Virus record (IMG/VR): IMGVR_UViG_3300046092_000062
Coordinates: 124,001-188,000 of that record
Direction: 5' to 3' (one strand)
Length of the DNA: 64,000 bases
Shown: one piece after another, positions 2,312 to 63,589 of the stretch
Position numbering within the stretch: the stretch's first letter is position 1
Layout of the letters: the number at the start of each line of letters is the position of its first letter
Notes under the pieces: model-generated
Told to the model about the DNA's origin: nothing
Database searches by the model: none
What the model saw: only the letters and a program-made list of their open reading frames with translations
Made by a program: the position numbers and the translations under genes

Positions 2312-4612
2312 ATGAGTCAAATAAACGTCACGAAGAGAGACGGCCGTAAAGAGCCACTAAATTTAGAGAAGCTACACAAAGTTGTTTTTTGGGCAACCGA
2401 AGGAATTACAGGAGTTAGTGCAAGCGAAGTAGAAATCAATAGTCATGTACAATTCTACAACGGCATCAAGAGTACAGACATTCAAGAAACGCTTATCAAA
2501 AGCGCAGCAGACTTAATTAGCGAAGAATCACCAAATTACCAATATGTAGCAGGACGCTTGCTTACATATCATATCCATAAGTTAGTTTATGGAGACTTTA
2601 AGCCATGGCCATTGCTACAGTTAGTTAAACGTAACACTGACATCGGCTACTACACAAAAGAATTGTTAGAAAACTATAGCGAAGACGAGATCAATCAAAT
2701 GGACTCGTATATCAAACACGAACGTGATGAAACATTCACCTACGTGGCTATGGAACAATGGCGCGGTAAGTACCTAGTACAAAACCGTGTCACTGGCGAA
2801 ATCTTTGAAACACCACAAATTGCATACATGTTGATTGCTGCCACATTGTTTATGGCCTATCCAAAAGAAACACGTATGCAATGGATTAAGGACTACTATG
2901 ATGCTATCTCTAATTTTGATATCAGTTTGCCTACCCCTATTATGGCCGGTTTACGCACTCCACAGAAGCAGTTCAGCTCGTGCGTTCTTATCGAGTCTGG
3001 CGATAGTCTCGATAGTATCAACGCTACTTCTAGCAGCATTGTTAAGTATGTCTCACAAAAGGCAGGTATTGGAATTGGTGCTGGACGTATCCGTGCGCTT
3101 GGAAGCCCTATTCGCAATGGTGACGCATATCATACAGGCATCACACCTTTCTTAAAGCACTTTCAAACAGCCACTCGCTCATGCAGTCAAGGTGGCGTGC
3201 GTAACGGCGCAGCAACTATCTATTACCCATTGTGGCACCTAGAAGTTGAAGATATGCTTGTTTTGAAGAACAACAAAGGCACAGAGGATAACAGAGTACG
3301 CCAGATGGATTACGGCGTCCAATTCAACAAATTAATGTACGAAAGACTTATTCAAGGTGGCAATATCACCTTGTTTAGCCCCCACGACTTGCCGGAAATG
3401 TACGATGCTTTCTTTAACAACCAAGAGTTGTTTAAAGAGCTGTATGAGAAGGCAGAACGCAATACCAAGATCCGCAAGAAGACTATTCCTGCTGCGGAGT
3501 TGTTTGGTAAGTTCATGCAAGAGCGCAAGGACACTGGTCGTATCTATTTGATGAACGTGGACCATGCTAACACGCATAGCCCATTCAAAGAAGAGTTGCA
3601 CCCTGTTAAGATGAGTAACTTGTGTACTGAGATTAACTTGCCAACTGTGCCATTGATGGACATTAACGACGAAGCAGGTCGTATTGCATTGTGTACTCTT
3701 TCTGCACAGAACTGGGGTAACGTTAGAAAGCCACAAGACTTTGAACGCATGTGTACTCTAAGCGTTCGTGGCCTAGACGCATTGTTAAGCTACCAGAACT
3801 ATCCAGTTAAGGCTGCTGAGATTGCAACTAAAGAATTCCGCCCATTGGGTAACGGTATTATTAACTTTGCCTACTTCTTGGCCAAGCATGATGTATCCTA
3901 TAGCGATCCACGTGCATTGGCACTAGTTGACGAGTACGCAGAAGCATGGTCATACTACTTGATTAAAGCAAGTGCAGACTTGGCTCGAGAACAAGGTGCA
4001 TGTGAGAAGTGGGACGAGTTGAAGTATGCCGACGGTATCCTCCCAATGGACACACGCAAGAAAGAAGTTGACGAACTAGTTGAACATCAAGAGCGTATGC
4101 CTTGGCGTGCTCTACGTGAACAGATTCTAACTACAGGTATCCGCAACGCTACACTAATGGCCTTGATGCCAGCGGAAACTAGCGCACAGATCTCTAATGC
4201 CACTAACGGCATTGAACCACCAAGAAACTATGTTTCTATTAAGCAAAGCAAACACGGAGTACTAAAGCAGGTTGTACCTGAATTCCGCAAACTAAAGAAC
4301 AAATACGAATTGTTATGGGACCAACGTAGCCCAGAAGGCTACCTAAAACTATGTGCAGTATTACAAAAATGGATTGACCAGGGTATTAGCATCAACACTT
4401 CGTACAACCCTAAGTTCTACGAAGATGAAAAGATCCCTATGAGTGAGATGCTCAAGCACTTGCTAATGTGCTACAAATACGGAACTAAACAACTTTACTA
4501 CTTCAACACAAACGATGGACAAGGCGAGATTGATGTCGACAAGCTGGGCGCTACAACGCAATTACCAGAAGGTGACATGGGTCAAGAAGACTGCGATAGC
4601 TGTGTAATTTAA
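2312..4612 (+). CDS. nrdA: ribonucleotide reductase class Ia alpha subunit
   Basis: ATP-cone (VTKRDG), SSC, SNLCTEI catalytic motif, MPAETS, C-terminal CDSC. Confidence 0.98.
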   Translation: MSQINVTKRDGRKEPLNLEKLHKVVFWATEGITGVSASEVEINSHVQFYNGIKSTDIQETLIKSAADLISEESPNYQYVAGRLLTYHIHKLVYGDFKPWPLLQLVKRNTDIGYYTKELLENYSEDEINQMDSYIKHERDETFTYVAMEQWRGKYLVQNRVTGEIFETPQIAYMLIAATLFMAYPKETRMQWIKDYYDAISNFDISLPTPIMAGLRTPQKQFSSCVLIESGDSLDSINATSSSIVKYVSQKAGIGIGAGRIRALGSPIRNGDAYHTGITPFLKHFQTATRSCSQGGVRNGAATIYYPLWHLEVEDMLVLKNNKGTEDNRVRQMDYGVQFNKLMYERLIQGGNITLFSPHDLPEMYDAFFNNQELFKELYEKAERNTKIRKKTIPAAELFGKFMQERKDTGRIYLMNVDHANTHSPFKEELHPVKMSNLCTEINLPTVPLMDINDEAGRIALCTLSAQNWGNVRKPQDFERMCTLSVRGLDALLSYQNYPVKAAEIATKEFRPLGNGIINFAYFLAKHDVSYSDPRALALVDEYAEAWSYYLIKASADLAREQGACEKWDELKYADGILPMDTRKKEVDELVEHQERMPWRALREQILTTGIRNATLMALMPAETSAQISNATNGIEPPRNYVSIKQSKHGVLKQVVPEFRKLKNKYELLWDQRSPEGYLKLCAVLQKWIDQGISINTSYNPKFYEDEKIPMSEMLKHLLMCYKYGTKQLYYFNTNDGQGEIDVDKLGATTQLPEGDMGQEDCDSCVI

Positions 4613-54033: not shown

Positions 54034-54057
54034 AAACCCGCTTCGGCGGGTTTCTCT
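54034..54057 (+). terminator. intrinsic terminator
   Basis: AAACCCGC-TTCG-GCGGGTTT. Confidence 0.85.
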
Positions 54058-54091
54058 TGACCAAAAACTATTTTGGGCGTATAATATCTAT

Positions 54092-54322
54092 ATGAAAAAA
54101 TTAAACGTCAACGATATCATGCAGTGGACTGGTACACTCTGCTTCATGGCCATGTACACTTTGATGTCAATGAACATCTACCCATGGAACATTGTAGCAG
54201 GACTTAGCGGTAGTACTTGCTACTTAATATGGTGTCTGCGTGTTGTAAATAAGCCACAGATGGTTGTTAACGCAGTGGGCATCATTGTGTGCCTAGTTGG
54301 TCTAGTTAAGGCTTTTGGTTGA
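54092..54322 (+). CDS. small 3-TM membrane protein
   Basis: Hydrophobic; YPWN, VVN; promoter 54057-54085. Confidence 0.7.
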   Translation: MKKLNVNDIMQWTGTLCFMAMYTLMSMNIYPWNIVAGLSGSTCYLIWCLRVVNKPQMVVNAVGIIVCLVGLVKAFG

Positions 54323-54377
54323 CCCGAAATGGATTTCTTGCTATAATAATGGCATAGTAAGTAAAAAGGAGTTAGCA

Positions 54378-54803
54378 ATGAAAAACTGGACCGATTCGTG
54401 CATTAACTGGCATCAACTCTCTGGTACCGAAGTCAAGCGTTTGCTTGATACTTGGGGCATGACTGAGCGTCAAATTGCTAACTACGATGTCAAGCATGGG
54501 TATGCAACTGCACCCAAAGCAGAACCAGCTACTAAGAAAGTAGTAGAAAAGGCTCCTGCTAAAAAGACAGCAGAGGCCAAGCCCGCAGCAAAGGCGCCGG
54601 CTAAAACTCCTGCTAAGAAAACTGCTACAAAAGTAGTACAAAAAGCTGCCACCCGTCAAAAGCACACCGGTGCAGATGGCGAAATCAAGTTCCTGGATCA
54701 CCGTGATCTCTATGTGGGATTTTGGGGCGGGCGTGTTGTAGTTACCAAGCGTACCGAAGCTCAGTGCCGTGCGTACTTGACTGCGAACCACGGCACAGAA
54801 TAA
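54378..54803 (+). CDS. early protein with K/A/P-rich linker
   Basis: Promoter 54319-54347; AAGGAG RBS. Confidence 0.7.
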   Translation: MKNWTDSCINWHQLSGTEVKRLLDTWGMTERQIANYDVKHGYATAPKAEPATKKVVEKAPAKKTAEAKPAAKAPAKTPAKKTATKVVQKAATRQKHTGADGEIKFLDHRDLYVGFWGGRVVVTKRTEAQCRAYLTANHGTE

Positions 54804-54866
54804 ATGGTTGACCCGAAATGAATTTTCGGGTATAATAGCTACATAGCAAACAAAACAGGAGTTAGC

Positions 54867-55193
54867 ATGTTAACGATGTCACTTGAAACTAAAGAATCGA
54901 ATAACAAGTTTTTCGCATTGCAAGATCGTCGTATGCGCAATCATGCAAACAAAACCCTGTATACGACAGCCCAGCAAATTCGCTTGGACCGCATTAAGCT
55001 CGCACTCGAGATGGTGCTCCACGGTACTGTTTACGAGCCATCGTATGGTAAGAAAAGTGCCAGTGTTAAAGTGCAAGACGGTGCCCTAATTGCAGATCGC
55101 AAAACACTGCGATTGCTTGAAGAAGACTGGTCAAAGGAAGGCATCTTTAAGAAAGTGTCTGCCCAAGGCTTTCAATACCACGTGCCACGCTAA
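54867..55193 (+). CDS. hypothetical early protein
   Basis: Promoter 54808-54836; AGGAG RBS. Confidence 0.7.
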   Translation: MLTMSLETKESNNKFFALQDRRMRNHANKTLYTTAQQIRLDRIKLALEMVLHGTVYEPSYGKKSASVKVQDGALIADRKTLRLLEEDWSKEGIFKKVSAQGFQYHVPR

Positions 55194-55258
55194 TTTCGGT
55201 TGACCCGAAATGGTTTTGGTTGTATAATATACACATAGTAAGAAACAAAGGAACTGAA

Positions 55259-55534
55259 ATGCAAGCTGTTGAAATCGCCCGTGCAATTATTGCTAGCAAC
55301 TACACTAACGACGAACTGAATAACATCAGTGATGCAATCCGTTTTGTACGTGCGCAAATGATTCACAAGAATACAGGCAGCTTGGTTATCGGTACCAAGG
55401 TTAAGTTTACACATCCTAAAACCCGTGCAGTGCATTACGGTGTGGTTAAGAAAGTTAAGATCAAGAACGTGACTGTTCTGGAAAACGGTACACTGAACTG
55501 GAACGTTCCGGCTAACATGCTGGAGGCAGCATAA
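55259..55534 (+). CDS. hypothetical early protein (SH3-like C-terminus)
   Basis: Promoter 55200-55228; W.VPA.ML. Confidence 0.7.
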   Translation: MQAVEIARAIIASNYTNDELNNISDAIRFVRAQMIHKNTGSLVIGTKVKFTHPKTRAVHYGVVKKVKIKNVTVLENGTLNWNVPANMLEAA

Positions 55535-55607
55535 TGCTTGAAAAGGTAAGTGCGTTCTTGCTTGGTGTGTTTATTGGTATGAACATTATTGTTTGGGGGT
55601 TTATGGT

Positions 55608-55823
55608 ATGATGGAAATGCGTTGACTTAAACGCCCAATTGGAAACAAACTTAGCGGAACAAAAATTGTCACCGTTTACGAACGTGTGCTGCAATACCGC
55701 CAAATGGAAGACAAGACAGTTTATGCGCAGGCAAATGCCTTGTCGCAAGACTTTATCGCCCGAGGTCATCGCAACATGCAATGGTCTGAGTGGACTGACA
55801 TTCGTGAAGTTGTAGAGGAGTAA
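55608..55823 (+). pseudogene. small ORF interrupted by TGA at codon 6
   Basis: MMEMR*LKR...ERVLQYRQ...WSEWTDI; TGA at 55623-25. Confidence 0.5.
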
Positions 55824-55825
55824 TC

Positions 55826-55954
55826 ATGCGTAATTTAGCAATTGGCTTTGTTCTTGGTTTGGTTGTGGCCACTGTTGGCTTTAGCGGTGTTGCAAGGATT
55901 CTGGATAAGAGCATCGACTCCGTCAAGACTCACAGCAAGGAATTGGCTCAGTAA
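55826..55954 (+). CDS. small membrane peptide (42 aa)
   Basis: GAGGAG RBS; GFVLGLVVATVGFSG. Confidence 0.6.
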   Translation: MRNLAIGFVLGLVVATVGFSGVARILDKSIDSVKTHSKELAQ

Positions 55955-56077
55955 AATGGGCAAAAAGAATTTAAATTGTGGTTGACTCATTATTCGAAAT
56001 CAACTATAATTTAAATACTGTAGCAATGAGGCTACATTGAGAGTGTGTTTTTCAATTAACGTAAATGGAGTTTACAA

Positions 56078-56489: not shown

Positions 56490-56876
56490 TTGATGATCAA
56501 GTACATTAAAGAAACCACCACGCCAGCGGATGTAATTAGACCTGTGTTCCGCCCAGAACTCAAGCATGTGTTTGATGCAAGGGATGCAATTATTACAAAA
56601 TATAATGTTGCAGGTACCGAAACAACCCACGAAAAAACAGATTTACCAGACGGGTCAAAAATCACTGTAATGGTCAAGTTCTTTGAGTCTGTAGAGAAGT
56701 TTGATCAATGCTTTGCAGAGTTGCGAGATGCAAATCAAACTATCACTGCAACAGTCAACAATGAAAATGTCACAGTTGACTCAATCAACCACAATTTTGG
56801 AATCACAATTCGATATCAATTGCGTGATGCAGAGACTGACGAAATTGTACGAGATTGGACAGTTGCAGGTCGTTAA
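56490..56876 (+). CDS. late hypothetical protein
   Basis: CTAAATA and AGGAG upstream. Confidence 0.65.
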   Translation: MMIKYIKETTTPADVIRPVFRPELKHVFDARDAIITKYNVAGTETTHEKTDLPDGSKITVMVKFFESVEKFDQCFAELRDANQTITATVNNENVTVDSINHNFGITIRYQLRDAETDEIVRDWTVAGR

Positions 56877-56902
56877 ATTATAGCCTTGTGCTATAATGTA
56901 AG

Positions 56903-57226
56903 TTATTGCTGTATGAAGCAAAGAGAAAAGTGTTCTGGACGCGGGTTCGACTCCCGCCAGGTCCACCATTAAGCATACTACCCGACTGTAAAATTCAGTA
57001 AGCATTTAGGGAAGATCCACAGTAGTATGTTTAATAATGGGCCTGCCATGGTTTCGACAGGGCAACAAGTAAACAAGTGGACAGCTCGGCAATGTGAAAG
57101 CCGTTAGGGTTGGGGATTCCCGGCCGTAGAAGCAAAAAACGTAAATGCAAACGACGAACAGTTTCTAATGGTAGCCTGATAAAGGCTTCCGGGGCAGCTA
57201 TGCCTTGCAACAGGAAATAGTAATAG
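56903..57226 (+). ncRNA. ssrA: circularly permuted (two-piece) tmRNA
   Basis: T-arm and 3' acceptor strand GCGGGTTCGACTCCCGC-CAGGTCC-A-CCA (ends 56968) precede the 5' end GGGCCTG..TTCGAC (57039); G3-U70 Ala pair; tag ORF 57147-57179 ANDEQFLMVA. Confidence 0.9.
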
Positions 57227-57246
57227 GGGCTTCGGCCCCTATTTTC
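57222..57246 (+). terminator. intrinsic terminator
   Basis: AATAGGGGC-TTCG-GCCCCTATTTT. Confidence 0.85.
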
Positions 57247-57265
57247 TAATTACATACTCTATTCA

Positions 57266-58234
57266 ATGAAAAAATTCTTTTGTCCTGCACCGTGGCGATC
57301 TTTGTTCTACCATGTTGATCAATCGGCTGTGTGCTGCATTAGTTCTAAGAAGTTTAGCATGAGTCCAATAGAGTTTAGAAATAGCGACTACCTTAAAGAT
57401 TTAAAAACTAAATTTTTAAATAACGAGTTCGACGAAACTTGCAGTGGATGCAAGTCTCTAGAAGACGCAGGGCTGCAAAGTATAAGACAGCACCTACTCG
57501 CACTATACAGTGAGACCACAGTTGACCAACTCGATTATATGGAGCTGCGAGCAAGCAATCTTTGTAATTTTCAGTGCAAGATGTGCAATAGTGAAAACAG
57601 CTCTCTTATCAGTGGCTCAGTTAATACCGTCTTAGATTCTGACTGGGACGAAATACTTACTATGTCAGAGAATCTAAAGTTCCTTACATTAACTGGCGGC
57701 GAGCCAATGATAATTAAGCACTACTACCAGTTACTGGATCACTTGATAGCTAAAGACAAAACAGACATTAACTTGCGAGTCTACACCAATGCAAGTGTGT
57801 ATAATCACATATTCGTTGAGAAGCTGCTGAAATTTAATACAACATTAAACCTCAGTGTTGACGGAGTAGGAAGAACAGCAGAACTACAACGCACAGGCAC
57901 AGTCTGGTCTACAGTACAAGATAACATTACCAAGTTTGTGGCTTTACCGATTCAGATAAAATTTCATACCACTCTCACAAACATCTCGATCGTTGACATA
58001 CACTCGTTGGCCAAGTACTTTGTCGAGATAGTTGAAAATAATCCCCACTGCACCTTTGTTGCACATACTGCCAACAGTCCCAAATACCTATCCATTTACA
58101 ATCTAGCGCCTGCATTGTTTAACACCGCATTACGTAGCATCGAATCTGCACTAGGCATTCTAGTGCATCCACAATTTGCACAACTCAGAGAGCAGTTGGT
58201 TGCACATCAATCACTAATCAAAAGCAAACAATAA
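57266..58234 (+). CDS. radical SAM protein with N-terminal Cys (twitch/SPASM-like) domain
   Basis: CNFQCKMC, GGEP, TNAS, SVDG; FCPAPW, CC, C..C. Confidence 0.88.
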   Translation: MKKFFCPAPWRSLFYHVDQSAVCCISSKKFSMSPIEFRNSDYLKDLKTKFLNNEFDETCSGCKSLEDAGLQSIRQHLLALYSETTVDQLDYMELRASNLCNFQCKMCNSENSSLISGSVNTVLDSDWDEILTMSENLKFLTLTGGEPMIIKHYYQLLDHLIAKDKTDINLRVYTNASVYNHIFVEKLLKFNTTLNLSVDGVGRTAELQRTGTVWSTVQDNITKFVALPIQIKFHTTLTNISIVDIHSLAKYFVEIVENNPHCTFVAHTANSPKYLSIYNLAPALFNTALRSIESALGILVHPQFAQLREQLVAHQSLIKSKQ

Positions 58235-58370
58235 CTTGAATATGCCGTCGGCCTTAGGCCTATTGTCGACATAGGAAAAGTTAATGGAAAATCGTAGATT
58301 TATAGAGTAAATAAATGTACAATAGATACACGAACATACAGTTCTTAACATTTTAACAAAGGAAATCAAA

Positions 58371-58910
58371 ATGAAAACAATCGGTGATAAACTAACCCCA
58401 TTCGCAGTAACAGGTGTTAAGCCAGGGCAACCAGCTGACCCATACTTCACAATTACAGACCAAAGCTTCGAAGGCAAGTGGAAAGTAATCGTGTTCTATC
58501 CAAAAGACTTTACATTCGTATGTCCAACAGAAATCGTAGCATACGATAAGTTGACAGGTGACTTTGCTGACCGTGATGCAATCTTGCTAACAGGTTCGAC
58601 AGACAACGAGTTCTGTAAGACAGCATGGCAAATGGCACACGCTGACTTGAAGAAAATCACTCACACTCAGTTTGCTGATACACAACGTGGTGAGTTGAGC
58701 TTGGTTGAGCAGTTGGGTGTATTCTACGCTCCAGCAGGTGCTGCACTTCGTGCAACATTCATCGTTGACCCAGAAAACGTTATCCAACACGTTACCGTCA
58801 ACAACTTGGACGTGGGCCGTAGCCCAGAAGAAACCCTGCGTATTCTTGACGCATTGCAAACTGGCGAACTTTGCGCTTGCAACCGTACCATCGGTGGCGA
58901 AACACTTTAA
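58371..58910 (+). CDS. ahpC: peroxiredoxin AhpC
   Basis: FYPKDFTFVCPTE, RATFIVDP, GR..EE.LR. Confidence 0.95.
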   Translation: MKTIGDKLTPFAVTGVKPGQPADPYFTITDQSFEGKWKVIVFYPKDFTFVCPTEIVAYDKLTGDFADRDAILLTGSTDNEFCKTAWQMAHADLKKITHTQFADTQRGELSLVEQLGVFYAPAGAALRATFIVDPENVIQHVTVNNLDVGRSPEETLRILDALQTGELCACNRTIGGETL

Positions 58911-58924
58911 TTAAGGAGACTGGC

Positions 58925-59431
58925 ATGGCTTTTATCGATACAGTAAAAGGTGCGTTACCCGAGTACGCAAAAGACACCAAACTTAATTTGGAAGCAGTCC
59001 TTGTCCGTAGTACACTAGATGCTGATGTTGCAATGGGCTGTGCAGTAGCCGCACTTGCTGCAACTGGCAATGGTAAAGTACTGAGCATCTTGTTAGCAGA
59101 CAGTCCAGTACACGCAGAGTCAGCAATGACGGCTGCATCAATTATGGCACAAAACAACACGTGGTATCCATTTGTTGAAATGGCAGACGATCCTAATCTA
59201 AAGGGATTGCCAGCTCAGTTGCGTATGAACGCCATTGCAAGTCACGGTGGTACTACCAAAGCTAATTTTGAAGCGTTTAGTCTTGCAGCCAGCATTGTTG
59301 GTAAATGTCACTTCTGTGTTAAGGCGCATTACGAGACATTGAAGGCAGAAGGCTACACAGTAGAGAACTTACGAGACATTGGGCGTATTGCAAGTGTCAT
59401 GAATGCTGTAGCCAAAGTGCTAAACAGTTAA
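58925..59431 (+). CDS. ahpD: alkyl hydroperoxide reductase AhpD
   Basis: PEYAKD.KLN, MAQNN.WY, CHFCVKAH. Confidence 0.93.
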   Translation: MAFIDTVKGALPEYAKDTKLNLEAVLVRSTLDADVAMGCAVAALAATGNGKVLSILLADSPVHAESAMTAASIMAQNNTWYPFVEMADDPNLKGLPAQLRMNAIASHGGTTKANFEAFSLAASIVGKCHFCVKAHYETLKAEGYTVENLRDIGRIASVMNAVAKVLNS

Positions 59432-59529: not shown

Positions 59530-59721
59530 ATGGCAGAAGTTAAACTAAATGGTCCCTTGTACAAAGTCACAATGACTGAATATGAGCGTGGTTATGGCCA
59601 GCGCCCAATGGGAGAAAAGTTGTTTGATAACGAGCAAGAAGCCAAGGATTTTGTTGCAGCATACAACAAAGATCCCGGCGATCCCGACTGCTACTACCGC
59701 GCAGACTACAGAAAGGTTTGA
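59530..59721 (+). CDS. small phage protein (EYERGYGQR)
   Basis: AGGAG RBS. Confidence 0.7.
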   Translation: MAEVKLNGPLYKVTMTEYERGYGQRPMGEKLFDNEQEAKDFVAAYNKDPGDPDCYYRADYRKV

Positions 59722-59752
59722 CAAATAATGGTTTTGGTTGTATAATACATAT

Positions 59753-59923
59753 ATGAACAAAACAAAACGCTTTTATTTCGGTAACGAATGGTTTCTTCCA
59801 CCCTTCCGCGTACACGGATATTGGGTGGAAGATGCTACCGGAAAGAACGTAGCAGAAGCAGCAAGCCCTGCACTTGCCAAAGCATTAGCAGAATTGCTAA
59901 CTAAAATGTCTGTAACTGCTTGA
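59753..59923 (+). CDS. small hypothetical protein
   Basis: Promoter 59718-59746, leaderless ATG. Confidence 0.6.
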   Translation: MNKTKRFYFGNEWFLPPFRVHGYWVEDATGKNVAEAASPALAKALAELLTKMSVTA

Positions 59924-59965
59924 CAATAAAAGAATCAGGTGTTATAATAAACACATAAATAAAAA

Positions 59966-59988
59966 TACAGAGAGATAGACTTTCTGTA
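59966..59988 (+). promoter_or_regulatory. 5' UTR hairpin with G-ATAGA-C loop
   Basis: TACAGAGAG-ATAGA-CTTTCTGTA after promoter 59920-59948. Confidence 0.6.
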
Positions 59989-60014
59989 CTCAACATTATA
60001 CAAAGGATTTTTGT

Positions 60015-60482
60015 ATGTCAGTAGATTTCACATCACCCGAGATGATTGCAGCAGTATGCGAGGCACTGCCCTTAGCAAACCGCCCAGCAGTTGAAGCAAT
60101 CGTAAAAGCATTAACTGAAAAGCTCAATGTAGCAACCCCCAAACAACGAACTGTCTACGCAGTGTGGACCAACACAGACTTGACTGAAGGTCGTGGTCGT
60201 GAGTATGTTCAATACCTTTGCGAGAAACGTGCAACAGCACTTCGCAAAGCCAAGAAGAACTATGTTATGGGCACCGATAGCCGCGTAACAGAAGAAAAAC
60301 TGTTTAACGCAGGCAGTGGCTGGTATGGTCCAGTTAACGTGCTTGACCCAAGTCAAGAAGACTTACGAGTTGAGCAACAACTTGAAGCTGAACAGAAAGC
60401 AAAGTCTGCCAAAGAAGCAGCTATTGCTAAAGCAAAAGAATTGGGCTTAACCGAAGCCGACATCAAAGCATTGCGAGGTTAA
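60015..60482 (+). CDS. phage protein (NTDLTEGRG motif)
   Basis: AAGGA RBS; C-terminal coiled coil. Confidence 0.7.
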   Translation: MSVDFTSPEMIAAVCEALPLANRPAVEAIVKALTEKLNVATPKQRTVYAVWTNTDLTEGRGREYVQYLCEKRATALRKAKKNYVMGTDSRVTEEKLFNAGSGWYGPVNVLDPSQEDLRVEQQLEAEQKAKSAKEAAIAKAKELGLTEADIKALRG

Positions 60483-60483
60483 T

Positions 60484-61500
60484 ATGAAAAAATACAATAC
60501 ACTGGTCTTGATTGGTCGCTTTCAACCCTTCCACAATGCTCACTTGGAAATTATCAAACGCAGCACTGCACTCTGCGACAAGCTGATTGTGATTACAGGT
60601 AGCGCAGCTCAACCCCGTACTTACAAGAACCCCTTCACTAGTGCCGAACGAGCACAAATGATTAAAGCCGCAACTGGCGGACTTGCATTGCAAATTGTCA
60701 TTGAAGAAAACATTGACACCATGTACAACGACCAAGCCTGGGCAGTTCGTGTTCAAGGTATTGTGCAACGCAATACAAAAGCTGGTGAGAAAATTGCTAT
60801 CATTGGACACAAGAAAGACGACAGCAGCTTTTATCTCGATATGTTCCCACAGTGGGGCTACGAGAACGTAGAAGAAATTGCACCACTCAGTGCAGTTAAC
60901 ATTCGCGATTTGTACTTCAAGCGTGATTGCAACATGGAATTCATCCGTGGTGTAGTGCCCCGTACTACTTTTGATTTCTTGACACAATTCAAAGAAACAC
61001 CAGAGTACGAACAAATCATTCGTGAACGTGAGTTCTTGATTGAACACGCCAAGCAATATGCTGGTCTCAAATATCCTCCAATCTTTAGCACAGCTGATGC
61101 CGCAGTGATTTGTTCGGGCCATGTGCTTATGATCAAACGCCGTGCTGAACCTGGACGTGGCTTGTGGGCACTGCCCGGCGGTTACGTTAACGCCAGCACT
61201 GACAAGACTGTACTGGATGCAGCTATTCGCGAACTCCGCGAAGAAACTGGTATCAAAGTACCCGAGCCAGTGTTGCGTGGCAGCATTACAGGCAACCGAG
61301 TGTTTGATGCAGTGGATCGCAGTCCACGTGGTCGTATCATCACCCACGCCTTTAAAATTGAATTGCCTGATGGTGCATTGCCTAAAGTAAAAGGCAGCGA
61401 CGATGCTGAAAAAGCACGTTGGGTTCCTATTGCAGAAGTGCGCAGCGATGAGTGTTTCGAAGATCACTACGATATGGTCCAGTGGGCTGTGGGTGTTTAA
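60484..61500 (+). CDS. nadM: bifunctional NMN adenylyltransferase / ADP-ribose pyrophosphatase (NadM-Nudix)
   Basis: GRFQPFHNAH, KNPF, SA..IR; Nudix box PGG...RELREETG, SDDA. Confidence 0.95.
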   Translation: MKKYNTLVLIGRFQPFHNAHLEIIKRSTALCDKLIVITGSAAQPRTYKNPFTSAERAQMIKAATGGLALQIVIEENIDTMYNDQAWAVRVQGIVQRNTKAGEKIAIIGHKKDDSSFYLDMFPQWGYENVEEIAPLSAVNIRDLYFKRDCNMEFIRGVVPRTTFDFLTQFKETPEYEQIIREREFLIEHAKQYAGLKYPPIFSTADAAVICSGHVLMIKRRAEPGRGLWALPGGYVNASTDKTVLDAAIRELREETGIKVPEPVLRGSITGNRVFDAVDRSPRGRIITHAFKIELPDGALPKVKGSDDAEKARWVPIAEVRSDECFEDHYDMVQWAVGV

Positions 61501-61501
61501 T

Positions 61502-61711
61502 ATGCACAAAAGCAATTACCAACCCAAGCGTAGTCAACAACTTTTCCTAGCTGAACAAGTTAGGACTCAAGTGTTTAACGACACAATGGATCAGATTGTT
61601 GTGCATCATGTGTTGGAAGATACTCCAACCCGATTGTATCTACAAATTGAACGCCGTGCAACAAGCCCGATGGGCTTTGATAAGATTTACTTTGAAAGAG
61701 TGGAGTTGTAA
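61502..61711 (+). CDS. hypothetical protein
   Basis: Packed ORF. Confidence 0.55.
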   Translation: MHKSNYQPKRSQQLFLAEQVRTQVFNDTMDQIVVHHVLEDTPTRLYLQIERRATSPMGFDKIYFERVEL

Positions 61712-61972
61712 ATGGTTACACTACCTGTAGATTTTGTGGCAACACGCTTTCCGGGTTACTTCTGGAACGTGGCAGAAGAGAAACTGTATTCTGTCAAAGT
61801 TACAGGCGAACTTCGCCCAATGGCATTCCATAAAGGTGGATTCTTTTACGGAACCAAGGTTGAACCCGGATATCAAATCAGCGTTAATGGCAGGAAGCGT
61901 ACATACCCAATGTCGTACTTGACTTCGCTCAAAGCAACCACAGCTATCCAAGAAATTGGTGTAGCGAAATAA
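61712..61972 (+). CDS. hypothetical protein
   Basis: PGYFWN...LYS.K. Confidence 0.65.
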   Translation: MVTLPVDFVATRFPGYFWNVAEEKLYSVKVTGELRPMAFHKGGFFYGTKVEPGYQISVNGRKRTYPMSYLTSLKATTAIQEIGVAK

Positions 61973-62012
61973 TAGTTGACACAGAAATAGGTCTGCGTTA
62001 TACTGTAAGCAA

Positions 62013-62034
62013 GTCCCAGAGATAGACTCAGGGC
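62013..62034 (+). promoter_or_regulatory. 5' UTR hairpin with G-ATAGA-C loop
   Basis: GTCCCAGAG-ATAGA-CTCAGGGC after promoter 61976-62004. Confidence 0.6.
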
Positions 62035-62058
62035 AACTTTAAATAAAGGAACTTTATT

Positions 62059-63462
62059 ATGAAACTCTCTAAAAACATCATTCTCAACACCGACAGCTAC
62101 AAAGTGTCAATGGGCCGCCAATACCCAGCTGGCACTACCAATGTATTCAGCTACATTGCAGCACGTGGTGGTAAATTCACATTCACGCAGTTTGTTGGAC
62201 TGCAAATGTTCATCAAGGAGTATTTGCTTGAACAAATCACCAAAGAAGACATCGACATTGCAGAAGAAATCCTCACAGCGCACGGCGAGCCATTTGACCG
62301 CAGCATGTGGGACTACATTGTCGAAGCACACAACGGCTACTTGCCAGTGGTCATTAAAGCCGTACCAGAAGGCACTGTTGTGCCAGTTGGCAACGCATTA
62401 GTCACAATCGAAAACACTGACCCCAAGTGCCACGGTTTAACTACTTGGTTGGAAACTCCATTGCTTCGCGCAGTGTGGTACCCAACTACAGTCTCAACAC
62501 AAAGCAAGTACATTAAAAACATCTTGCAAGAATACTTGGAGAAATCAGGTGATCCTGCTTCTATCGGTTTTAAACTGCACGATTTTGGTGCTCGTGGTGT
62601 ATCTTCAATGGAGAGTGCTGGTATTGGGGGTGCAGCCCACTTGGTCAACTTCATGGGCACGGACACTATTACTGGTGTTCTTTACGCTCGTGAATATTAC
62701 AATGCTGGTATTGCTGGATTTAGCATTCCTGCAGCCGAACACAGTACTATCACTAGTTGGGGTCGCGCAGGCGAACTGAACGCTTACAGCAACATGGTTA
62801 CACAGTTTGGCAAGCCAGGCGGCATTGTTGCAGTTGTGTCTGACAGCTATAACATCTACGAAGCATGTAAAATGTGGAGCACTGGTGCGCTGAAACAGCA
62901 AGTGATTGATTCAGGTGCCACAGTTGTTATCCGTCCTGACTCAGGTGATCCTGTTGACGTGATGCCAAAGATGATTGCAATTCTTGCAGAAGGTTTTGGT
63001 TACACTACAAACGACAAGGGCTACAAAGTTCTCAACAATGTGCGTATGATCTGGGGTGATGGTATTAACCCATTGTCAATCCAAAGCATCTTGCGCACAA
63101 TGGTTGACGTGGGTGGTTGGAGTGCAGACAACTTTGCGTTTGGTATGGGCGGTGCTTTGTTGCAAGCAATTGATCGTGATACACAAAAATGGGCTATGAA
63201 ATGCTCAAGTGCATGTATCGATGGTGAATGGGTTGATGTTTACAAAGACCCAATCACTGACAGCGGCAAAGCTTCACTCAAAGGTCGTGTCAAGTTGTGG
63301 ACCAACAGTGGTGGCGAGTTTGCGACAAGTGTGCAAGCCCCTACTGGTTGGAGCGACAAGGGCATCGGTGGTTGGGTTGATGCAATGAAAACTGTCTACA
63401 TGGATGGTGCATTGTTTAACGAAATCACCTTTGAAGAAGTTCGTGCTAACAGCATGAAATAA
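62059..63462 (+). CDS. nadV: nicotinamide phosphoribosyltransferase (NAMPT)
   Basis: TDSYK, LHDFGARG, PAAEHS, VSDSY, RPDSGDP, GDG, FGMGG.L. Confidence 0.96.
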   Translation: MKLSKNIILNTDSYKVSMGRQYPAGTTNVFSYIAARGGKFTFTQFVGLQMFIKEYLLEQITKEDIDIAEEILTAHGEPFDRSMWDYIVEAHNGYLPVVIKAVPEGTVVPVGNALVTIENTDPKCHGLTTWLETPLLRAVWYPTTVSTQSKYIKNILQEYLEKSGDPASIGFKLHDFGARGVSSMESAGIGGAAHLVNFMGTDTITGVLYAREYYNAGIAGFSIPAAEHSTITSWGRAGELNAYSNMVTQFGKPGGIVAVVSDSYNIYEACKMWSTGALKQQVIDSGATVVIRPDSGDPVDVMPKMIAILAEGFGYTTNDKGYKVLNNVRMIWGDGINPLSIQSILRTMVDVGGWSADNFAFGMGGALLQAIDRDTQKWAMKCSSACIDGEWVDVYKDPITDSGKASLKGRVKLWTNSGGEFATSVQAPTGWSDKGIGGWVDAMKTVYMDGALFNEITFEEVRANSMK

Positions 63463-63514
63463 TGAGTAACAAGGGCATTGACTAACATCGGTGCTCTTGT
63501 TATAATTACAAAAT

Positions 63515-63589
63515 GCGCTAGTAGCTAAATGGTATAGCAGGAGTTTCTAAACCTCTGAATCGCGGGTTCGATTCCCGCCTAGCGCACCA
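63515..63589 (+). tRNA. tRNA with CUA anticodon (amber suppressor)
   Basis: GCGCTAG/CTAGCGC acceptor, GCTA/TAGC D stem, GGAGT-TTCTAAA-CCTCT anticodon arm (CTA 63547-49), GCGGG-TTCGATT-CCCGC, encoded CCA; promoter 63478-63506. Confidence 0.8.

Follow-up and report, generated by a model that had tools for sequence, protein, structure and literature searches.

The expression of NAD-salvage genes is known to be controlled at the DNA level by NrtR, a Nudix-related, ADP-ribose-responsive repressor of nadM-nadV and prs-nadV, with ADP-ribose signalling NAD breakdown. NrtR binds double-stranded DNA through a winged-helix domain, at 21-bp palindromes with a conserved GT-N7-AC core, and its Nudix-like sensing domain is structurally close to the Nudix domain of NadM (PMC2330246). 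At the RNA level, the NAD+-I (nadA motif) and NAD+-II (pnuC motif) riboswitches are cis-acting elements in the leaders of NAD-related genes, built of bulged stems and a pseudoknot with conserved internal nucleotides, and NAD+-II involves the Shine-Dalgarno sequence. In phages, the NAD salvage II cassette of nadV plus nadM is called NARP2 and is a documented answer to NAD+ depletion, a widespread antiphage strategy. It comes at a price: unregulated NARP2 overproduces NAD+ and drains PRPP, and the KVP40 operon was toxic in E. coli (10.1101/2024.02.11.579819).

The genes of this cassette in one phage genome, and in many other phages and proteobacterial chromosomes, are preceded by a leader of two hairpins, P1 and P2, which matches no Rfam family and no paper that could be found. 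The leader precedes the same target genes that NrtR controls, but it is an RNA hairpin whose arms are not conserved in sequence, and no nrtR gene was noted among the ORFs listed for two of the loci, although none was specifically searched for. It differs from the NAD+ riboswitches in architecture and in target genes, and covariance-model searches at E up to 10 on the region of the window and at E up to 1 on five phage and bacterial loci gave nothing at the motif positions.

Other analogies in form come from other pathways. The iron-responsive element bound by IRP1 (cytosolic aconitase) is a short hairpin with a conserved pseudo-triloop-type loop and a freely covarying stem, placed in the untranslated regions of several mRNAs of one pathway and read by a metabolic enzyme whose RNA binding depends on its cofactor state; a 5' copy blocks initiation. 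That system is eukaryotic, with a different loop (CAGUGN plus a bulged C) and a different protein fold, whereas here the binder is only inferred and a second hairpin holds the Shine-Dalgarno sequence. The PyrR binding loop of pyr leaders and the phage translational operators (MS2 or PP7 coat protein, T4 RegA and gp43) are small operator hairpins near the ribosome-binding site, recognised through loop bases, that give autogenous or pathway-wide repression. Their sequences and proteins are different, PyrR (a PRTase fold that responds to nucleotides) acts on transcription attenuation, none concerns NAD metabolism, and none is shared between bacterial chromosomes and phages as a mobile module. The guanidine-II riboswitch (mini-ykkC) also has two small hairpins with covarying stems, conservation confined to the loops and the Shine-Dalgarno sequence next to the second hairpin, but its loops are identical ACGR tetraloops that kiss, while the two loops described here differ, are purine-rich and are not complementary to each other.

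Two leaders in the NAD-salvage cluster of a phage genome

The window, the whole 64,000-nt stretch of DNA that was analysed, belongs to a phage genome of 320,767 bp. A preliminary description of the sequence had drawn attention to two hairpins that share a loop, each just after a sigma-70 promoter, at the head of two NAD-salvage transcripts. This observation is confirmed. The shared 11-mer AGAGATAGACT lies at 59971-59981 and 62018-62028, has no other match with up to 1 mismatch in the window, and has no other exact copy on either strand of the genome. Both copies follow strong sigma-70 promoter-like sites on the + strand, at 59920-59948 (TTGACA, 17 nt, TATAAT with a TG extension; 12 of 12 consensus matches) and at 61976-62004 (TTGACA, 17 nt, TATACT; 11 of 12). 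Most other strong promoters in this genome are followed by short unstructured leaders.

The first P1 hairpin (59966-59988, +) has a 9-bp stem and the loop AUAGA closed by a G-C pair, with a folding energy of -9.0 kcal/mol (z = -4.1), and is covered by the best covariance-model hit in the genome (59958-60017, E 6e-11). The second (62013-62034, core 62015-62033, +) has 3+3 pairs around an A.A mismatch and the same loop; at -6.1 kcal/mol (z = -1.6) it is weak on its own, but it too is covered by a covariance-model hit (62005-62061, E 8e-9). Each P1 is followed by a second conserved hairpin over the ribosome-binding site, which the preliminary description did not mention. In the first leader, P2 (59997-60017, +) has 8 pairs, with the Shine-Dalgarno AAGGA split between the 5' arm and the loop, and the AUG (60015-60017) paired. 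In the second, P2 (62042-62058, +) has 7 pairs and the same split Shine-Dalgarno sequence, and ends at the base before the AUG. Such a hairpin is not a general feature of this phage's genes, as only about 13 of 294 starts have a comparable hairpin of 6 or more pairs.

The second leader heads nadV (62059-63462, +), a nicotinamide phosphoribosyltransferase gene with NAMPT matches in Pfam (PF04095 and PF18127). The first had been described as heading the nadM-Nudix operon; more exactly, it heads orf155 (60015-60482, +), which has no Pfam or PHROG match and whose position is taken in other phages by unrelated small ORFs. The nadM-Nudix gene (60484-61500, +; NMN adenylyltransferase plus ADP-ribose pyrophosphatase, PF01467 and PF00293, E 2e-77 to PDB 2qjo) follows with stop and start codons 1 nt apart (TAA 60480-60482, ATG from 60484). 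Two small ORFs of 69 aa and 86 aa (61502-61972, +) lie between nadM and nadV; they have no family match and are not conserved in the related loci. Metatranscriptome contigs matching 59700-63500 show that relatives of these genes, and one relative's leader, are present in RNA libraries, although the contigs also cover promoter DNA and do not resolve 5' ends.

Covariation and distribution of the P1-P2 leader

The same leader precedes nadV, nadM or the first ORF of the nadM operon in about 150 distinct phage leaders, many of them from jumbo phages, and precedes nadM, nadV and an SPFH gene in about 80 leaders from Alpha-, Beta- and Gammaproteobacteria. The motif is thus not phage-specific. On 60 representative leaders, 88% of cells pair, against 27-49% when the partners are slid; the covariation score is 0.715 against 0.08-0.16, and 12 of 14 pairs show double changes; P2 pairs also covary. 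On 94 phage and bacterial leaders the figure is 92.4% against 39-50%. Only the loop is conserved in sequence (G-A-N-A-G-A-C, where N is U, A or C). The linker is variable, with P1 lying 5 to 25 nt upstream of P2, and no pseudoknot partner for the loop is conserved in the linker or the early coding region. P1 and P2 both appear in the minimum-energy fold of 59 of 94 leaders, and P1 in 87 of 94, with no conserved competitor helix; in the window both hairpins start with UACA, but this is not general. A conserved loop on a covarying stem, at a fixed position close to the ribosome-binding site (the loop lies 35-46 nt before the AUG in 147 leaders), is the anatomy of a protein-binding operator hairpin.

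The element acts as RNA, and the evidence points to the sense strand. In paired cells G.U outnumbers A.C 125 to 15, and hairpin-qualified GANAGAC is found 98 times on the + strand and once on the - strand in phage loci, and 80 against 5 times in bacterial loci. Several phage copies start inside the last codons of nadM with no promoter, and bacterial copies sit between cistrons, in nadM-nadV and nadV-SPFH intergenic regions, so the motif is not tied to the 5' end. These data contradict a DNA operator for NrtR or another dimeric transcription factor, which an inverted repeat just downstream of the -10 box in the window, before genes of a kind that NrtR regulates, might otherwise suggest. The NrtR core does not fit either: the positions that should be T and A form a freely varying pair in the alignment (AU 28, CG 17, GC 7, UA 4), and the outer arms only covary. 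This reading is very unlikely.

It is also unlikely that the leader is a structural element with no specific partner, such as an mRNA stabiliser, a processing site, or a ribosome standby or enhancer hairpin. In the window both copies lie close to the predicted 5' end, hairpins flanked by A/U-rich single strands can probably serve as standby sites, and the nadV linker appears to resemble the T7 gene 10 epsilon enhancer. However, an invariant loop across phages and three proteobacterial classes, on top of freely varying stems, is not needed for a barrier or standby hairpin, and copies internal to operons cannot be 5'-terminal stabilisers.

Restriction to a single pathway is likewise left unexplained by a purely structural role. 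Whole-genome scans of phages gave 2, 2 and 3 strong hits, all in the NAD cluster, and in five bacterial genomes the significant hits lie only in nadM-nadV. nadM genes without their own leader are tightly packed behind an ORF that has one, and several show an overlapping ATGA stop/start. No other conserved neighbour gene was found. The partner must therefore travel with the cassette or be a metabolite.

Candidate partners of the P1 loop

The preliminary description had inferred an undescribed cis-regulatory RNA that coordinates NAD salvage, an inference supported by the comparative data, and had proposed NadM-Nudix, an NrtR-like ADP-ribose sensor or a minimal NAD-metabolite riboswitch as its basis. 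Of these, the data favour NadM-Nudix. In bacterial loci the motif at nadV was seen in 32 of 48 loci with nadM upstream (an undercount, as it rests on pattern matching) and in 0 of 18 without. In phage loci with a 'type 1' NadM (56-100% identity to that of the window), GANAGAC is present at nadV in 57 of 62, plus 4 near variants. Loci whose NadV is just as close (63-74%) but whose NadM is a 33-37% identical paralogue have it in 0 of 20, and their nadM leader carries instead a covarying hairpin with loop G-GYRGU-C. On the NadV tree this swap needs 11 changes, at least 4 of them on well-supported branches. The match between loop type and NadM type could nevertheless be hitch-hiking, because the nadV leader often lies directly next to nadM and could be exchanged together with it; a test on independent pairs gives only 4 of 4 pairs (p = 0.125). 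The one lineage in which nadV is 2.2 kb from the type-2 nadM has a type-2-like hairpin, but that is a single case.

These observations are consistent with a model in which P1 plus P2 is a modular mRNA leader controlling translation of each independently translated unit of the cassette: nadV, nadM-Nudix or a small ORF translationally coupled to it and, in bacteria, an SPFH gene. P2 holds the Shine-Dalgarno sequence, and often the AUG, in a weak hairpin, while the invariant pentaloop of P1 would be the recognition site of a sequence-specific trans-acting factor, possibly the type-1 NadM-Nudix protein encoded by the cassette itself. Free enzyme bound at P1 would block or slow 30S loading at P2, giving autogenous repression and co-repression of nadV, and the Nudix-domain ligand ADP-ribose, or another pathway nucleotide, would relieve it, so that salvage would rise when NAD+ is being broken down and stay low otherwise. 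Protein binding, its assignment to NadM-Nudix, the direction of control and the effector are inferred rather than shown, and the protein has only NMNAT and Nudix domains, with no recognisable RNA-binding domain and no known report of RNA binding. A rough probability of 0.45 is given to this reading. More tentatively still, the enzyme-operator pair could be a bacterial and phage counterpart of the aconitase/IRE circuit, moving as one unit between proteobacterial chromosomes and jumbo phages, with operator specificity co-diverging with NadM paralogues (GANAGAC against GGYRGUC), and gating NARP2 so that this counter-defence fires only when host immunity is destroying NAD+.

A minimal riboswitch, in which the P1 loop, perhaps with the P2 loop, binds ADP-ribose, NAD+, NMN, nicotinamide or PRPP and changes access to the ribosome-binding site, is not excluded but is less likely. 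The element is self-contained, travels with the cassette, serves one pathway and has the Shine-Dalgarno sequence in P2, as many expression platforms do, and guanidine-II appears to offer a precedent for such a small two-hairpin form. On the other hand, only 6 invariant nucleotides, in one pentaloop plus its closing pair, leave little for a pocket, with no conserved internal loop, junction, linker or pseudoknot partner and no mutually exclusive fold. A copy before each cistron of one operon is unusual for riboswitches, and the change of loop when NadM is replaced by a paralogue with the same enzymatic domains is hard to explain if the same metabolite is being sensed.

An operator for a different protein, namely NadV, a host factor common to Proteobacteria or an unlinked phage or bacterial RNA-binding protein, would have the same anatomy but also seems doubtful. 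PyrR is probably a precedent for a PRTase-fold protein that binds a leader hairpin, yet NadV lineages equally close to that of the window lack P1 whenever NadM is type 2, and nadV without an adjacent nadM never had the motif in the 18 bacterial loci examined. A dedicated unlinked regulator would be expected to show its own site or a conserved neighbourhood, and none was found. P2, with GGA in its loop, resembles a CsrA-type site, and CsrA binding is not ruled out, but the P1 loop lacks GGA, CsrA is probably not general in Alpha- and Betaproteobacteria, and a host factor does not explain why the loop switches with NadM type. A link between the UAG in the loop and the neighbouring tRNA with anticodon CUA was dismissed, because bacteria carry the motif and the middle loop base varies.

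A conserved, portable RNA control element on these genes would be the first regulatory layer described for a phage NAD-reconstitution pathway, and it concerns bacterial nadM-nadV operons for which no description of an RNA-level regulator was found. KVP40, Ralstonia phage RsoM2USA and Xanthomonas phage XacN1 lack P1. A scan of 150 sampled Gammaproteobacteria added one further true carrier besides the centre genome, and two false positives (REP- or terminator-like). The family comprises about 230 natural variants, alongside the sister class with the different loop, and its cultured carriers include Xanthomonas phage LucasX, Achromobacter, Stenotrophomonas pavanii, Hahella and Thiothrix eikelboomii.

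The NAD-salvage region and its two leaders

The window is taken from bases 124001-188000 of a single 320,767-bp virus record, which comes from freshwater metagenomes, has 43.8% G+C and is 92% complete by CheckV. The virus is a jumbo phage with many near-consensus sigma-70 promoters. The region of interest encodes orf155 (60015-60482), nadM-Nudix (60484-61500; PF01467 plus PF00293; E 2e-77 to the Synechocystis enzyme 2qjo), two small ORFs and nadV (62059-63462; PF04095 plus PF18127). Together, nadV and nadM make up the salvage II route that phages use as NARP2 against NAD+-depleting immunity (10.1101/2024.02.11.579819).

The preliminary description of a shared hairpin loop behind two promoters holds. 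The sequence AGAGATAGACT lies at 59971-59981 and 62018-62028, and occurs nowhere else in the window with up to one mismatch, and nowhere else in the whole genome on either strand. Each copy is the apex of a hairpin (P1): the first, at 59966-59988, has 9 pairs (-9.0 kcal/mol, z -4.1), and the second, at 62013-62034, has 3+3 pairs around an A.A mismatch (-6.1 kcal/mol, z -1.6). Each lies shortly after a promoter-like site, scoring 12 of 12 and 11 of 12, respectively, whereas most other strong promoters of this phage are followed by short unstructured leaders. Dozens of TTGAC[CA], 17 nt, TATAAT promoters, at window 54057-56010 and genome-wide (for example at positions 139513, 178808, 195030 and 288212 of the whole record), are followed by a nearly identical short leader that ends in ACAGGAG and then ATG, which looks like a stereotyped early-gene expression cassette.

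The preliminary description did not note a second hairpin, P2 (59997-60017 and 62042-62058), which holds the Shine-Dalgarno purines in its 5' arm and loop, pairs the AUG in the first copy and ends at the base before it in the second. Only about 13 of 294 candidate gene starts in the genome have a comparable hairpin of 6 or more pairs, and the two NAD leaders are among the best. A few other genes have P2-like hairpins holding the Shine-Dalgarno sequence but without P1, at window 56078 (180078 in the whole record) and at positions 94334 and 118175 of the record; the one at window 56078 follows a promoter and another 5' hairpin. Outside the window, five gene starts (192055, 192527, 193426, 194095 and 209403 of the record) share the block TGTTTATGTTGAGGTGGGCATG, which can fold as a hairpin over the ribosome-binding site and is probably the conserved initiation region of a paralogous gene family.

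Comparative evidence in phages and bacteria

Protein-guided searches fetched 160 IMG/VR loci with relatives of nadV or nadM. In the great majority of these, GATAGAC sits about 37 nt before the nadV start and about 45 nt before the start of nadM, or of a small ORF preceding nadM. There are 147 distinct leaders of this form, with the loop 35-46 nt from the AUG. The downstream genes are nadV, nadM-Nudix, or unrelated small ORFs (about 67-155 aa, most 105-124) that precede nadM; nadM genes lacking their own leader are tightly packed behind such an ORF, and several show an ATGA stop/start overlap. On 60 representatives, RNAalifold recovers both hairpins. For the P1-P2 structure, 88.0% of cells pair, against 27-49% when the partners are slid, with a covariation score of 0.715 against 0.08-0.16; 12 of 14 pairs show double changes, and the closing G-C is invariant. 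It is very likely that this is a real, selected RNA structure.

The evidence points to action as RNA on the sense strand. In six or more phage loci, the 5' arm of P1 overlaps the last codons and stop codon of nadM, and no promoter lies there between nadM and nadV. G.U pairs outnumber A.C 125 to 15 in paired cells, and hairpin-qualified GANAGAC occurs 98 times on the gene strand and once on the other strand in 1.3 Mb of phage loci. These facts exclude a 5'-terminal stabiliser and leave next to no room for a promoter-bound DNA operator; the NrtR operator, a 21-bp palindrome with a GT-N7-AC core (PMC2330246), is not matched. A structural role without any partner is unlikely. Metatranscriptome contigs show that relatives of these genes, and one relative's leader, occur in RNA libraries, but they also span promoter DNA and give no ends.

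The leader is not phage-specific. A scan of one genome per prokaryotic species for NadV relatives returned 80 bacterial loci, and the same P1-P2 leader, with G+C-rich stems where the genome is G+C-rich, precedes nadM, nadV and often a third gene encoding an SPFH/Band-7 protein. Carriers include Achromobacter, Bordetella, Stenotrophomonas, Xanthomonas, Hahella, Microbulbifer, Thiothrix, Acetobacteraceae, Methylococcaceae and others. With these included, the loop consensus becomes G-A-N-A-G-A-C, with N = U, A or C. On 94 phage and bacterial leaders, 92.4% of cells pair, against 39-50% slid, although this alignment was fitted to the model and so leans towards the structure. The third copy, before the SPFH/Band-7 gene downstream of nadV, was seen in several Gammaproteobacteria (position 4444 in bacterial locus L195, 5010 in L200, 4520 in L201 and 4442 in L222); in Halioxenophilus (L195) that gene appears truncated. 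In the Olavius Gamma 3 symbiont (L200), an ALIL pseudoknot, the frameshift element of an IS3-type insertion sequence, lies next to the nadM-nadV cluster at 596-712. The cultured Xanthomonas phage LucasX has the leader before both genes, whereas KVP40, RsoM2USA and XacN1 do not have it.

The regulon appears to be the cassette. Covariance-model scans give two hits in the window's genome, two and three strong hits in two complete relatives, and one in LucasX, all in the NAD cluster. In five bacterial genomes the significant hits are only in nadM-nadV(-SPFH), among the best 150 first-look candidates scored per genome, and in a sample of 150 Gammaproteobacteria one further genome had a true copy, again at nadM-nadV. 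No other conserved neighbour gene is apparent. Among bacterial loci, the motif at nadV was seen in 32 of 48 with nadM upstream, which is an undercount because the first search pattern missed GACAGAC, and in 0 of 18 without nadM upstream. No Rfam family and no paper that could be found describes the motif. Leader hairpins and translational operators are known in general; what is new here is a cis-regulatory RNA family, with a sister class, that is shared between bacterial chromosomes and jumbo phages and attached to a counter-defence pathway.

Candidate partners of the P1 loop

Only the loop is conserved. The linker varies in length and sequence, internal loops are optional, and P1 and P2 co-exist in the minimum-energy fold of 59 of 94 leaders. 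This is the anatomy of a protein operator such as MS2, PP7, boxB or IRE rather than of a ligand pocket, and a translational operator read by a protein is the more probable reading. Because the element works in phages and in three proteobacterial classes yet regulates only this cassette, the partner should be encoded by the cassette or be a metabolite.

A natural swap is informative in this respect. Phage loci fall into two NadM types, both of which are NMNAT plus Nudix. With type 1 (56-100% identity to the window's NadM), GANAGAC is present at nadV in 57 of 62 distinct loci, and four of the remaining five have near variants or imperfect stems. With type 2 (33-37% identity, about 324 aa), it is present in 0 of 20, although their NadV proteins are just as close to the window's (63-74%). 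The type-2 nadM leader instead carries a sister motif, with the same P1-P2 architecture and loop G-GYRGU-C, before the distant NadM-Nudix paralogue (phage loci L016, L020-L022, L029-L031, L036, L043, L046, L064 and L071); in most of these loci nadV has no P1. This hairpin itself covaries, with 99% of cells paired and 6 of 7 P1 pairs showing double changes. On a NadV tree the NadM type needs 11 changes, at least 4 of them forced by well-supported branches. All 4 independent pairs go the same way, but four pairs cannot reach significance (p = 0.125), and the nadV leader is often adjacent to nadM and could be exchanged with it. In L043 and L071, where nadV is 2.2 kb from the type-2 nadM, the nadV leader has a hairpin with a type-2-like loop (G-ACGGU-C), although this is one lineage only. 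The pattern argues against NadV as the binder and against a riboswitch sensing a shared metabolite, and it fits co-divergence of NadM and its operator. A minimal riboswitch is improbable, and a protein other than NadM-Nudix is also unlikely, if somewhat less so.

The mechanism proposed here is inferred. Free type-1 NadM-Nudix would bind the P1 loop on each translation unit and, together with the weak P2 hairpin over the ribosome-binding site, limit initiation; occupancy of its Nudix or NMNAT site by ADP-ribose or another pathway nucleotide would release the RNA. NadM-Nudix as the reader of the loop remains tentative, with a probability of roughly 0.45. Such a mechanism would mirror NrtR, whose ADPR-sensing domain is structurally close to the NadM Nudix domain (PMC2330246). 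It would also make sense of the cost of unregulated NARP2, which overproduces NAD+ and drains PRPP; the KVP40 operon was toxic in E. coli (10.1101/2024.02.11.579819).

Surroundings of the NAD cluster

Just upstream of the NAD cluster, a redox-related auxiliary gene block (57266-59431) encodes a radical-SAM protein, an AhpC/TSA peroxiredoxin and a CMD (AhpD-like) protein. ARAGORN calls a permuted tmRNA (tag ANDEQFLMVA) at 56876-57270, the 3' end of which overlaps the start of the radical-SAM ORF (57266-58234), and which is probably a false positive. Directly after nadV (63478-63589), a tRNA with anticodon CUA, of the amber-suppressor type and labelled tRNA-Pyl by ARAGORN, lies at 63515-63589 under its own TTGACT, 17 nt, TATAAT promoter, and may hint at TAG read-through or recoding in this jumbo phage.
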